Shown here one piece after another: positions 5,487 to 10,439 of a stretch of 64,000 nucleotides of DNA (the first letter of the stretch is position 1; each line of letters begins with the position of its first letter). The stretch is from assembly GCA_965603825.1 (NCBI GenBank), contig CBFDEM010000049.1:1-64000 (forward strand). Direction: 5' to 3'. The translations under genes were made by a program, and so were the position numbers. The notes beneath the pieces were generated by a model. It was not told the origin of the DNA, made no database searches, and saw nothing but the letters and a program-made list of their open reading frames with translations. Source of the DNA: Blepharisma stoltei ATCC 30299. Taxonomy: Eukaryota > Protista > Ciliophora.

Positions 5487-6923
5487 ATGTATCAAACTTT
5501 TGATTTCAATGATAGCTTAGACCACAAAAAAGACTTGAAATTCAAAGAAATAGCCCATTATGCAAAAAAACCAGGATCTACCAAGTGATTTCATGATAAT
5601 TCTGGACTTCCTTATTCAACGCTAATGAGTCATTATAAGCCAACTCTTCCAACTACTCCTCAGACAAAAACTCATAGAAATTCTTCTTGAGATTTACTAA
5701 GCCCTACAAATGCCAATTTTACTCACAATTATTCACAAATTATAGAAAATAAACTAAAAGATTCAATCGGAAAAAGCCACCCAGAAAATCAAATGGGTCA
5801 CTGTTATAAATTAACTCCAAAAGAGGCTATATTAAAGGTAGAAGACGCTTTAAAATATTTGAAATTAAGGGAAATTGGGTGCAGCAAACAAGAAGCTATT
5901 ACATTTTGCAGCAGAGATAGGTGCACTCATTCAGTGCCTGAATATGAACTTCCTGCAAGATTACGAACGAACCATAGCTCAAGGACTTTAGTAAACCAAG
6001 AAAATTCGAAATATAAGCTGTATAAGTCAAGTATGGAAGTGGAGTGTTTTGATTCTGTAAATAAAGCAATTACTAATTATTTAATTGCTCATAGGTATGA
6101 ACCTGAACCTTATATGAATTCGTATATAGAAGAATGCCATCAAGATAATCTAACTGAATTAGCGAAAAAAGAAAATAATGAAATAACTATATTGGAAACA
6201 GAAGAATTTATAGACGAGGCCAATAAATTGTACAATTTTAAATTGCCTTTTAGAACTCTGCTAGAAAAAATTATTAATAAGAATACCCTTGAAAAAATAG
6301 AAATTTCGCCTAAAAATTCTACAGTAAAGAATTTTGATGATTTTGCATCGGAAAGGCCATTAATTAGGTTTTCCTCCATAATCACTCCAAAAAAGGAGCC
6401 TAAAAAGAGCAGCCCAGAAAAAATGAGCTTTTCTCAAATTCTTCATCCGCAAACAATCCCAAAGCAAACAGTTAATGAGCAAACTGATCATAATATCCTT
6501 ATAAAATCAGAATCTTCCAAGTCTTATGAATTAAAATTAAAACAATCTCGACGTGATTTTTTAAACATGAAAAATCTCGAAGAAAAAATAAAGCAAAATA
6601 TAATCAATTCCAAATATGAACTTTATGAAAAAATTTGTAAAAAAGCTTCACAAAATGATGCATTAATTAGAAAAAAGCAAGAAAAAAAGCAGCAAATTGA
6701 TGAAGATATGCAAAAACAATTAGAATTAAAATTTGAAGAAATTAAAGAGAAAATGGAAAAAGCCAAGCAGGAAAGATTAAAATTAAAAGAAGGAAAAAAA
6801 ATAAAAGCAAAAGAATACAATAAAAAACATGATCAGAAAGTTGAGGAACTTAGGGTCAGCAAATCTATTGATTTAGAAAATAGGATGAAAATTATGCTAA
6901 AAAGGCAGAAATCGAAATTTTAA
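5487..6923 (+). CDS. Hypothetical protein with C-terminal K/E/Q-rich coiled coil, 478 aa
   Basis: ATG 5487 is in frame with ORF 5793-6923 through two TGA codons; ends in TAA. Confidence 0.7.
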
Positions 6924-7569
6924 TAATTTTTAATTTTTGATTTTTTCTCTAATATCATTGATAATTTCTAAAGCATATGATGATAATTCTTTATTGCACA
7001 AGCAGCAGTTATCACTAGGCCAATAAATTTGGCATAAAACACAAACATCATCTTCGCAACATCTTTTAGGGATAAATCTCTCCCTTTTGAATTTTTCCCC
7101 ACATATTTTGCATATCGCATATAAAATTTTATCGATTTTTATTTTGGTTTCTTCTGATAATTCACGTTTGCATTCTAAGCAGTTACCCATTCCCATTATT
7201 TGAACTAAGCATTCTCTGCAATAATAATGCTTTAAAGGGCAAATAGATGTCAAGCAATTCTTTACAAAATAAACTATTTTTTTACAGCCATCACAATAGC
7301 CTTTTTCAGAAATAAACTCTTGAGTATAATTATCCCATTTTTCCACCTTCCCAGAACGTAAATTAAAAGCAAAACATTCTTTGCATAAATTATCATGAAA
7401 TTCACTAATTTCTTTAATAATTCCGCAGTTCTTGCAACTAAGATATTTCTCCTGATCTGCCTGAGCCAGTAGGAAGTCATATATAGGTTCAATAATTTTT
7501 CAATAATTATCTTTTTTTAGTGGATCCCTACATATTGAGCAAAAAAAGGGTAATTGATTTATTTCAAGC

Positions 7570-8218
7570 ACTTTCATTTTTTAGAGCGAAATGAGTCACA
7601 GCCTGAACAGTATCTTGAACAACTACCTGAAGCACAGCCTGAGCAGCAACTTGAGCAGCAACTTGAGCAGCATCCTGAGCAGCAACTTGACCAGAAACTT
7701 GACCAGCAACTTGACCAGCAACTTGAGCAGCAATTTGAGCAGCAATTTGAACAGCTACATAAACTACATCATGAACAACACCATGAAAATCTATGTGATG
7801 TACAGCCTGAGCGGCAACTTGAACTACGCACTGAGTGGCAACTTGTATCACAGTCAGAGAGGCAACCTGAACTGCAACATGTACAGCTATCTGAAGAGCA
7901 TCTTGAACAACAACCTGCACAGCAAACTGGACAACATGGTCAAACAAAAGTAGGACTACTGGACATGATACTGTGTAGTTGAAGGTATGAAGAAATGGCG
8001 TGAAGCTGGATTGGAGGTGGTAGGCTTGAAGAGGTAAAGGCACTGGACAAAAGCATAAAACAATATCACATGGAAGTGCTAAGAGAGAGAGCAGCAGGTG
8101 CAGCTAGATTGAGAAGGACACAAGAATTAAAACAGAGTAGAATTACGAATTGATTAAAGCTTGATCCATAAGGATCGGTTAGGCGACTATACGTCGCTAG
8201 ATTTTAGATAAAGATAAA
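7570..8218 (+). mobile_element. Truncated or non-autonomous non-LTR retroelement-like insertion
   Basis: Flanked by a perfect 14-bp direct repeat GATTTATTTCAAGC (7556-7569, 8219-8232). One + frame is open (TGA=Trp) to TAA 8169-8171. Two 3' hairpins (GATCC-ATAA-GGATC 8163-8176; GCGAC-TATAC-GTCGC 8183-8197), a short (AAAGAT)n tail, and higher GC than the flanks. Confidence 0.75.
7638..7757 (+). repeat. 12-bp minisatellite (CTTGAGCAGCAA-like) x10, degenerating out to ~7600-7940
   Basis: Directly visible tandem units; explains the overlapping LEQQ / LSSN / QVAA ORFs on both strands. Confidence 0.9.
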
Positions 8219-8628
8219 GATTTATTTCAAGCTCAGAAAGTAATAGCTTCCCATTAGAAGCTTCAAGTATAATATTATTGGCACACTCTCTGCAATACTT
8301 ATGCGAGCAAATTAACTCTATTTCTTTAGGCTTTACTTTGCATTTTTCACAAAAAGGACTTATTGATATATTAATTGACTGCTCAGTATGATTAACTAGG
8401 CTATCAAGGAAGCCCTCTTGGGCCGGATTTTCATTAAGCAAAGAAATGATATTAATTGAACATTTCTAGTAAAATTTTGTTATTAAACCAAGAATATTAT
8501 TTAATAAAATCAAATTTTGCTTATTAATTTAATTAATGCTATCAATAATTTAATTATCAATCCGCTAAACCAAAATGGCTACTTATTTCACTTTAATTTT
8601 ATAAAAAATCAGTTTATAGGCTATAACT

Positions 8629-9016
8629 ATCGTTTATATTTTAAAAAAAAAATCATATCAGAAGGGTCGGAGTTATTTAATTCGCTTTTAGGAATGTTTT
8701 CATCTTGACTTTTACATTCAAATTCTTCTACACTAGCATCCTCTGTAGAATCCTCTGTATTCCCAGATAATAGATCACTTTCACAATTTTTTCATTCAAA
8801 AGACTTTTTCTCTTCATACTTTGGCTCATCTTTATCTAGCAAAAGATCCAATGGTTCATTAATTATTGTAGTTTTATTATCCAATCGAGGTCCCTCTGAA
8901 ATTTGAGAACTAGAAATTTGATTGTAACCCATATCTTCGTTTGCTGGAGATTCATTCTTTGGAGCCAAGTGCAATATTTTTGATTTTGATTTCTTCTTAA
9001 GCTCCTTTTTTCGCAT
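8629..9016 (-). pseudogene. Low-complexity acidic ORF, possibly the detached 5' part of the RING gene
   Basis: ORF 8792-9016 continues through TGA to a TAG near 8629; stops in all frames separate it from the RING ORF. Confidence 0.3.
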
Positions 9017-10439
9017 TTATTAAGGTGGAGCTGAATTATGAATCTACAAATTAATAAAAATATAGATAGAATTTGCAAAATTTGGAGCTTTTTAATTAGA
9101 AAAAGCAAAAAAAAAGCATTAAGCCGATGAAGGCATGCAAAAACAGTTCAAAAATACAAAAAAAAATTATGAGAAAATAAGGGCTTTTCTCGGTTTAATC
9201 ACCCGTAAGCATTTATATTAAAGTGGCATAAATAATGTCGAAATCACTGGCTTGTGTAATAATTCTAAGTAAATTGATCAGATAGAAATTTAGTGAAATT
9301 TTCTTATAAATCTTTGCTTTCCAAAGTTCTCTAATAAATATCTGATAAAAAAGTCTTTTAATTGAGTCTGATGATAACTAATTAAGAGCTCATAAGAGCT
9401 TCGAAATTGCATGCGCAATGTTATAGATAATAAGTCTGATGATAAAAATATATTGGATATGATATAATATAGAAGCTGATTTTAGTGAGTTCTAAGTAAA
9501 TATGCCATCAGGAGTGATCATTTTGATATATCTAAGATAATCATCTTAGAACGCCTACAGTTATCATTGAAAATGATGAATCTCCAATAGTAATTGACTT
9601 TAAGTATGATATAAAAAATAGCCATGAAGAAAAACCTTCATCAAATCAGTTATTTGTGGTAGAAGAGATGAATTCAAATTTAGAAGAATCCCCAGCACAC
9701 TCTCCAGTACATGGAATTCAAAGGGTGGGCTCGACAGATTTCAATTTTCTTAAGGAAAGTCCAAAAACAGTAGAAACTGAAAAAAGCGGTGATGAAATTA
9801 TGGAGGAATTCAAATTAATCAATTAAATAATTAACCTGCTAGAGAAACTTTAATAGGGCTATATTTTTGATTGAAAATTTACCAATGATCTTTATTGATC
9901 CAATTTTAATTTTTATTAATATAAATATTTCACCAGCTGAGAACTCAACAATGAATTCATTATTAAAATACTTTTTAAAATAATGGAAATTACTTAGAAG
10001 CAAAAACATCTATAATGTATTTTAATATGAAAAATAAAACTTTTTATTAGATCTTATTATCAATTATAAAATTTAAAAATTCTTGATTTTTATATGAAGG
10101 AAATTATGTCAAACACATTTTTATCGTATAAAAATTCAAAGAATTTAAAAAAAGCAGCATTGAGTTTATTCTTGATAAAATTTGAGTTAATTAAATTTTA
10201 TACAAGTTTTGAGCTTATTTAAAATAATCATCAATTTCGTATTCTTATGGCATCTCTACTCAAATCTTATACTTAGAAAATATCAAGCTAAATCACTCTT
10301 TCAGCTCTAGCAGTTACACTTTTATTTTTTAAATAAAATACCACTTTCTTTTCTTCCTTCACCAGCTCTCATTATCCCCACAAAATTTACTTCATAAAAT
10401 CTCTCTTTAAATTCCAATTTAACTTAACTATTCCAAAAC

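Follow-up and report, generated by a model that had tools for sequence, protein, structure and literature searches.

A strain-specific LINE inside a RING-finger gene of Blepharisma stoltei, with an interior that appears to be germline-limited

How new mobile-element insertions become DNA to be eliminated in ciliates is an open question, and retroelements are the least documented case. In Blepharisma stoltei, sequences of long interspersed nuclear elements (LINEs), assigned by RepeatClassifier to the families LINE and LINE/RTE-X, are present in both the somatic macronuclear (MAC) genome and the internal eliminated sequences (IESs) (Seah et al. 2023, PMC9942856). The same study described IESs of 173–182 bp inside the endonuclease domain of six LINE copies of ~4.1 kb, as well as dips in coverage suggesting partial excision of LINEs in the MAC, and conjectured that foreign DNA without suitable cut sites may be marked yet partly excised, with deleterious effect if intragenic (PMC9942856). 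Here we analyse a window of 64,000 nucleotides from B. stoltei ATCC 30299 (positions 1 to 64,000 of contig 49, CBFDEM010000049.1, assembly GCA_965603825.1) in which a LINE interrupts a RING-finger gene. Organism and kind of element are those of Seah et al., whose LINEs have an open reading frame 1 (ORF1) followed by an ORF2 with apurinic/apyrimidinic endonuclease (APE) and reverse transcriptase (RT) domains, some with internal IESs. Compared with those IESs, about 87% of the element is missing here, across a 12-bp junction without TA; compared with those LINEs, the insert is intragenic, is absent from the strain HT-IV and has an interior outside the published MAC+IES record. The locus would give the partial-excision conjecture (PMC9942856) a concrete case, apparently an unlisted one.

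The 3′ end of the element resembles that of stringent-type LINEs of the L2 clade, eel UnaL2 and zebrafish ZfL2, in which a conserved 3′ stem-loop stands beside a short tandem-repeat tail (PMC1636434, PMC4176376), the stem-loop is recognised by the ORF2 protein (PMC4176376), and tail and target have a few bases in common at the 3′ junction. The likeness is one of sequence architecture alone, and the Blepharisma elements differ in that the loop of the first hairpin holds the ORF2 stop codon. TA-bound IESs cut by excisases of the PiggyMac type (Paramecium, Blepharisma) are, as the interior of the LINE appears to be, germline DNA that is missing from the soma and joined at a terminal direct repeat, whereas the repeat described below lacks TA and lies inside a mobile element, and removal would leave the host gene broken. 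The LINE-like REP elements of Tetrahymena, too, are eliminated from the macronucleus; these germline-limited elements without long terminal repeats (non-LTR) were reportedly described by Fillingham and colleagues in 2004, and they sit in large, imprecisely deleted germline regions. We know of no terminal shell retained inside a gene that has been described for them.

On balance, we think it probable that the full-length LINE resides in the germline, that its interior is eliminated during macronuclear development and that a shell of its two ends is left in the MAC.

The insertion, its empty site and the host gene

The insert (7570–8218, 649 bp, 43% GC against about 30% in the flanks) lies between perfect 14-bp repeats, GATTTATTTCAAGC, spaced by 663 bp; the telomere of contig 49 is about 5 kb away. 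The preliminary description was accurate as to the insert length and the identity of the repeats, as it was in placing the insert antisense to its host and a TA in each repeat (7560–7561 and 8223–8224). Because about eight 14-mer repeat pairs are expected per 64 kb in Markov-1 simulations, such a repeat alone is weak evidence of a target-site duplication (TSD). The matter is settled by a natural empty site elsewhere that carries exactly one 14-mer. Contigs of four public runs were aligned to positions 5800–10200; all read evidence consists of Logan contigs, and the identities of the runs (X1, X4–X8 and X12) are inferred from run labels and the papers. The DNA of run X12, which stems from the MAC genome study, is diverged by about 3% and shows visible heterozygosity; its depth over the insert is essentially zero and its contigs pass directly from 7555 to 8219 (‘skips 663, both=14’). 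The same joint is present in an 855-nt contig of RNA run X8, which carries 19 substitutions and a 10-nt indel, mostly common to X12. Illumina DNA has been published for two strains, ATCC 30299 and the heterozygous HT-IV, and the RNA time course was made from a mixture of mating cells of the two (PMC9942856, PMC9942806); the strain with the empty site is almost certainly HT-IV. The empty site for which the preliminary description proposed to look in other strains is thereby seen in both DNA and RNA. The single 14-mer in the empty allele identifies the 14 bp as a true TSD, and the empty site in a strain about 3% diverged marks the insertion as a lineage-specific one of ATCC 30299.

The preliminary description had suggested that both the insert and one TSD, 663 bp in all, could be excised from TA to TA. 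In that case a 5′-truncated retrocopy would behave as an IES in at least part of the MAC copies, restoring the RING; the TA in both TSD copies and the empty-site contig in an RNA run speak for it. The TA adds nothing specific, however, because any pair of breakpoints inside the TSD would restore the gene, and the RNA contig comes from a time course that mixes ATCC 30299 and HT-IV cells and carries the variants of the other strain, the DNA of which is entirely without the insert. All empty-site molecules carry these variants, which identifies the empty site as the HT-IV allele, uninserted and transcribed, and no excision product. The MAC assembly contains the 663-bp unit, as does every MAC-type run (share 1.00), and the joint from 7555 to 8219 is found in neither of the ATCC 30299 runs X1 (MAC) and X7 (enriched for the germline micronucleus, MIC), in contigs that can hide rare forms. 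Given in addition that the insert is not 5′-truncated (below), we regard whole-unit excision as highly improbable.

Deletion of the 663 bp does restore the host frame, as had been claimed: on the minus strand, with TGA read as Trp, a single frame runs CEKC..CSHKYCREC..(25 aa)..CSIC, in which CSIC is the last CxxC of a C3HC4 RING ligand pattern, C-x2-C..C-x-H-x2-C-x2-C..C-x2-C, and then through further Cys-rich modules to a stop at 6930–6932. In the MAC form the frame exits the RING after the sixth ligand, reads 10 codons of LINE tail and stops. The upstream host piece alone matches Pfam zf-C3HC4 over positions 1–31 of 40 (E 0.0077), under the cut-off because the insert cuts the domain. The gene stays interrupted in ATCC 30299, whereas HT-IV has and transcribes an intact allele. 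In X8, a 673-nt contig is identical to the MAC form over 7541–8213, its strand and level not being readable from contigs; the sole other contig there is the HT-IV one, and over 6976–7416 the run has no contig of the ATCC allele. Loss of the gene may be tolerated because at least seven paralogues, the closest 45% identical, are present in the MAC.

Upstream of the RING, the HT-IV DNA and RNA contigs lose their match to ATCC 30299 at 8436/8437 and regain it near 8740. The ATCC frame has a stop and no in-frame ATG there, and the HT-IV transcript stays in frame for at least five codons further; at 8437–8740 there may be a second lesion in the ATCC allele, or else inserted AT-rich DNA. An intron was rejected as an account of the insert, since the host frame has stops throughout it and its ends are not GT..AG.

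LINE identity and end anatomy

Frames in the window are open only if TGA encodes Trp, and on the plus strand of the insert one such frame is open from 7572 to a TAA at 8169. In tblastn searches with genetic code 4, its last ~80 residues match the C-terminal ends of several B. stoltei LINE ORF2s (E 1e-10 to 1e-6, and 2e-19 for an element on contig C21), the matched regions having RVT_1 about 0.9 kb upstream of them on their own strand (contigs C45, C43, C4, C60, C21, C25 and C2). Protein identity to the nearest relative is about 30%. A profile of the domain finds 13 places in the MAC and 7 matches among 1.84 billion proteins, none of which is a full-length ORF2 with this C terminus: of the five that were read, four correspond to annotated products, one from the insert and the others from three relatives (C21 twice, C43), and one is a 54-aa fragment, and the remaining two matched in many short stretches. 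A repeat-rich 136-aa piece of the insert found no homologous protein. In the C21 relative, a zinc knuckle (weak zf-RVT) is followed by a Gln/Pro/Ser-rich linker of ~450 aa and then by the C-terminal domain, an order that identifies the 12-bp Gln-rich minisatellite of the insert as ORF2 linker. The RT and endonuclease domains are absent from the 649-bp MAC form. In all relatives, ORF2 ends with the pattern Q-x-[KR]-I-T-x-W-[LIMF], which resembles the PCNA-interacting protein (PIP) box and could serve in PCNA recruitment.

At its 3′ end the insert has two hairpins and a TAGAT(AAAGAT)2 tail, the final GAT of which forms the first 3 nt of the right repeat, all as the preliminary description had noted. 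The succession of hairpin, hairpin and tail is found with different flanks in at least 11 places (at least 10 elements besides the insert). In relatives with read 3′ ends, the ORF2 stop lies in an AUAA (once UUAA) loop of a 5–6-bp hairpin, with a GAAA-loop variant on C25; most continue with a second hairpin and a short-repeat tail, which is TAAGAT, (TAGA)n, (ATAGA)n or (TTGA)n. Across 11 elements, 95.5% of hairpin 1 cells are paired and 5 of the 6 pairs change on both sides, a covariation score that none of 500 shuffles reached, with slid windows 17–52% paired; the places came from the protein profile and the 20-nt windows were picked by eye, which favours pairing. Hairpin 2 was predicted separately in 5/5 folded elements with differing stem sequences, and its column counts are unusable because MAFFT misaligns the variable stem and loop. 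Rfam gave no match over 7500–9500. As the ORF2 stop lies in the loop of hairpin 1, there is almost no 3′ untranslated region (UTR) before the structure, and the whole 3′ end appears to be of stringent-type LINE architecture.

The TSDs of three relatives, GATTGCTTTTATCTG, GATGAATTATTT and GAAAGAGATAAAGGCA, measure 15, 12 and 16 bp. Each starts with GA(T/A), the same bases as the end of the tail, as in the window. From these four cases we infer that cDNA synthesis would be primed by a nicked bottom strand ending in ..(A/T)TC-3′ and paired with the last bases of the RNA tail. We found no description of the TSDs, the stop-in-loop hairpin or the tails of Blepharisma LINEs in PMC9942856 or its supplementary information.

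Assignment of the insert to the non-LTR (LINE) retrotransposons is thus strongly supported: the retroelement origin and the target-primed hallmarks that had been claimed for it (TSD, stem-loops, short-repeat tail and GAT microhomology) are joined by homologous elements. As to other copies sharing the 3′ end, these exist at the level of protein and structure; used as DNA queries against the MAC genome of the same strain, the 283-bp 3′ part and the whole insert matched only the insert itself, and at the DNA level the LINE lineage is unique in the MAC. The lack of a second DNA copy, together with the higher GC and repeat content of the insert, is what might be expected of a processed retrocopy of a cellular mRNA or of captured foreign DNA. 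Since homology to RVT_1-carrying LINEs extends over the ORF end, the stop-in-loop hairpin and the tail as well as over the 5′ end, we rejected the mRNA retrocopy and give an origin of either kind practically no weight.

A second, tiny LINE 3′-end insertion lies 1.2 kb away (55 bp, 9378–9432, in the region 9365–9445). It consists of a hairpin of the stop-in-loop type, AGCTC-ATAA-GAGCT, a second hairpin and a TAGATAATA tail, flanked by 13-bp TSDs, AGTCTGATGATAA. In the MIC-enriched run, 56 nt of it lie within a contig of very high depth, which suggests that it belongs to an abundant germline family; HT-IV contigs skip 9322–9517. At the tail of the main insert, MAC DNA run X1 has a 69-nt side contig that is identical over 8192–8221, departs from the main path beyond these 30 nt and has a depth like that of the main path, and contigs of X7 and X8 also end at 8212/8213; macronuclear copies may differ here in the length of the (AAAGAT)n tail. 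The public annotation places three chimeric genes here (7575–7577, 7591–7953 and 7965–8171): a 215-aa minus-strand gene that starts at an ATG within the LINE 5′ end (MKVLEINQLPFFCSIC..), a 120-aa plus-strand gene in which the ORF1 ATG is joined out of frame to ORF2 repeats, and a 68-aa plus-strand gene that is the ORF2 C terminus. More widely, positions 1–2626 of the window are 2.6 kb of telomere repeats, CCCTAACA, and many RVT_1 matches of the genome are likewise close to contig ends, no more than about 13 kb from them (C59, C11, C9, C1 and C23).

A probable germline long form and the somatic shell

Two MAC elements have a true 5′ end, a 3′ end and TSDs (C21, 529.7–532.4 kb, 2666 bp; C45, 71.8–75.4 kb, 3543 bp). 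In the C21 and C45 relatives, a short 5′ UTR and the ORF1 ATG follow directly after the TSD, and the C21 element starts with ACTTTCATTTTT, the same start as the window at 7570. Positions 7570–7594, continued by the run-on of an X7 contig described below, align without gaps to the C21 5′ end at 44 of 55 positions, and the resulting ORF1 start, MKKKTVALKSA, compares with MSQKRKKTVTLKAAQ and MDLQKKKTVVLKAAH in the C21 and C45 elements. With 7570–7594 as the true 5′ end, the insert reads as a shell and not as a 5′-truncated retrocopy.

Contigs that fit a corresponding long form come from run X7. Runs X4–X7, from one study, have contig sets of 44 to 84 Mb and MAC-word shares of 1.00, 0.98, 0.95 and 0.91, which fits the four sucrose-gradient fractions of the MIC-enrichment experiment in PMC9942856, with X7 as the one richest in MIC DNA. 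Contig 16 of X7 (3460 nt) covers 6927–7207, about 204 extra nt and 7202–7594; the 2582 nt that come after are unlike the window and start with AAAAGAAAACGGTGGCAC... The extra nucleotides are the 209-bp TA-bound IES recorded at 7202–7207 in GCA_914767885.1, and the presence of this known IES marks the contig as germline-type. Contig 17 (2494 nt) begins with 1864 nt unlike the window and then matches 7583–8212 without mismatch; the 30 nt before 7583 stay in the ORF2 frame (..WTDQDWIDKE, continuing into ERNESQ). Neither 30-nt run-on has a match with up to 3 mismatches in the MAC assembly of 41.46 Mb in 64 contigs, and both are therefore taken as absent from the MAC. The window matches of the two contigs overlap in a 12-bp repeat, AGAGCGAAATGA, which is present twice in the germline form, at the ORF1 start and inside ORF2, and once in the MAC. 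The lengths (25 + 2582 + 1864 + 624 nt) sum to about 5.1 kb, close to the ~5.2 kb from the ORF1 start to the 3′ end of an intact relative on C21. The interior, at least 4.4 kb, appears germline-limited.

Alternatively, the 649-bp form might be present in both nuclei, having arisen by an internal deletion at insertion (for example, through RT template switching at the 12-nt homology), with the X7 contigs being de Bruijn-graph chimeras with another full-length copy. The published MAC+IES record has the short form, the C21 relative is likewise an internally deleted shell in that record, and high contig depths suggest a multicopy LINE in MIC-enriched DNA. Yet the 25-nt 5′ segment is shorter than k = 31, so that the path of contig 16 needs real, locus-specific 31-mers that span at least 5 nt of the TSD of this locus and a base of the long form; a chance chimera is unlikely, as it would require a further copy with CAAGC directly before it (about 1/1024 per copy). 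Contig 16 moreover carries the known IES of the locus, and depth in the bin 7564–7710 of X7 comes from contigs 16 and 17 alone, with no MAC-form junction contig. We consider a short form in both nuclei quite improbable.

Table 1 Coordinates of features at the locus
Feature	Position in window	Strand	Remarks
Host gene part downstream of insert	6930..7556	-	Last RING CxxC (CSIC), Cys-rich modules, stop 6930–6932
Junction of 209-bp TA-bound IES, 26% GC	7202..7207	.	Within host coding region; X7 contig 16 and published MAC+IES record
Left TSD copy, GATTTATTTCAAGC	7556..7569	+	Host sequence; minus strand encodes ..LEIN; single copy in empty allele
LINE 5′ end	7570..7594	+	21-nt 5′ UTR, ORF1 ATG 7591–7593, one further base; by alignment to C21 relative
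12-bp junction repeat, AGAGCGAAATGA	7583..7594	+	No TA; overlap of contig 16 and contig 17 matches
3′ part of LINE ORF2	7584..8171	+	TGA = Trp; ends with TAA 8169–8171
Gln/Glu-rich 12-bp minisatellite linker	about 7592–7755	+	Within 3′ part of ORF2
Conserved ORF2 C-terminal domain	7938–8168	+	tblastn, profile
C-terminal motif QSRITNWL	8133..8156	+	Family-wide Q-x-[KR]-I-T-x-W-[LIMF]
3′ hairpin 1	8162..8177	+	6-bp stem, AUAA loop with ORF2 stop codon; folds
3′ hairpin 2	8182..8198	+	GGCGAC / GUCGCU, 5-nt loop
Tail, TAGAT(AAAGAT)2	8205..8221	+	Last GAT overlaps TSD
Right TSD copy, 14 bp	8219..8232	+	Single copy in empty allele, joint 7555 to 8219
Host gene part upstream of insert	8220..8465	-	First six C3HC4 RING metal ligands

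Fate of the interior

The history that we propose, the priming steps of which are drawn from the anatomy of the ends, is as follows. A LINE of about 5.1 kb with an ORF2 of the APE/RT type would have entered the RING gene by target-primed reverse transcription in the ATCC 30299 lineage, after its split from HT-IV. The bottom strand would have been nicked at 5′-..AAATC^AATT-3′, the nicked 3′ end, base-paired with the GAU that closes the RNA tail, would have served as primer for the cDNA, and a second nick 14 bp away would have yielded the TSD. The germline would retain the whole element. In the somatic macronucleus, the interior of about 4.4 kb would be gone, and with it all coding capacity, by a break that joins the two copies of AGAGCGAAATGA and leaves a 649-bp shell of the first 25 nt and the last ~624–636 nt (one copy of the 12-bp repeat being shared), plus both TSDs. 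The interior would then be an IES of the kind with non-TA terminal repeats, and although marked as foreign it would be cut at boundaries unlike the ends of the element. Of the earlier idea of a retroelement-to-IES intermediate, the part that stands is this interior, which appears germline-limited and is bounded by a 12-bp non-TA repeat; the whole 663-bp unit as an IES does not. Terminal repeats other than TA bound 16.5% of Blepharisma IESs, a class of 6,566 (PMC9942856).

Several points weigh against developmental elimination of the interior. Contig 49 of GCA_914767885.1 has the 209-bp IES but no insertion inside 7570–8218. The C21 shell (2666 bp, without APE and RT) is also without an IES in the MAC+IES record, which means that internal deletions can exist without a recorded IES. 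The germline form consists of two Logan contigs from one run, judged by their 30-nt run-ons, with the joining of the contigs unread, and contigs carry neither phasing nor frequencies at the level of reads. The loss may have taken place in development or in vegetative growth, and the junction repeat AGAGCGAAATGA lacks the TA found at three quarters (about 75%) of IESs. The genome records that encode the 68-aa product or the C21 relative are MAC and MAC+IES records only, neither of which has an IES of LINE interior. Either the long-read caller overlooked long IESs of LINE size or some shells go back to deletions in the germline; according to its authors, the germline part of the published assembly is incomplete (PMC9942856).

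Some of these points would also suit a different fate for the same full-length germline insertion, in which a spontaneous microhomology-mediated deletion between the 12-bp repeats removed the interior in the amitotic macronucleus and assortment fixed the short form. The junction is a 12-bp direct repeat without TA, the published IES set lists none here, ATCC 30299 has been in clonal culture for over 50 years (PMC9942856), and by a rough estimate about one chance 12-bp repeat pair is expected per 5-kb element. However, no mixture of long and short forms is visible, the MAC assembly and MAC-type runs having the short form only, IESs bounded by non-TA repeats are the recognised class mentioned above, and other Blepharisma LINEs carry programmed IESs (PMC9942856). 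We judge spontaneous deletion unlikely, though it deserves more weight than a short form in both nuclei.

Tentatively, and with no greater confidence than we give to spontaneous deletion, the interior can be taken a step further, as a freshly born IES: a strain-specific full-length LINE that is seen as foreign and gutted without evolved boundaries, with stubs that reflect memory of the parental MAC (small-RNA scanning) and not the chemistry of cut sites. If so, the excision pattern would depend on the cytoplasmic parent in ATCC 30299 × HT-IV crosses, and in progeny with HT-IV cytoplasm, where the old MAC carries the empty site, removal might extend to the whole element, possibly with cuts within the TSD, and so repair the RING gene.

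For LINEs of this species, partial excision has been published before, and the locus is an instructive instance of it without a new principle. What it offers is a dated, strain-polymorphic, intragenic LINE with an apparently complete germline form and a defined somatic shell. To the extent of our search, this is also the first anatomical description of Blepharisma LINE ends, with TSDs of 12–16 bp that start with GA(T/A), an AUAA stop-in-loop hairpin, microsatellite tails and a terminal Q-x-K-I-T-x-W-L, and this anatomy can be used to find more stubs, such as the 55-bp one 1.2 kb away. As both strains are routinely crossed, boundary choice, small-RNA targeting and maternal inheritance of excision are testable by polymerase chain reaction on this one locus.

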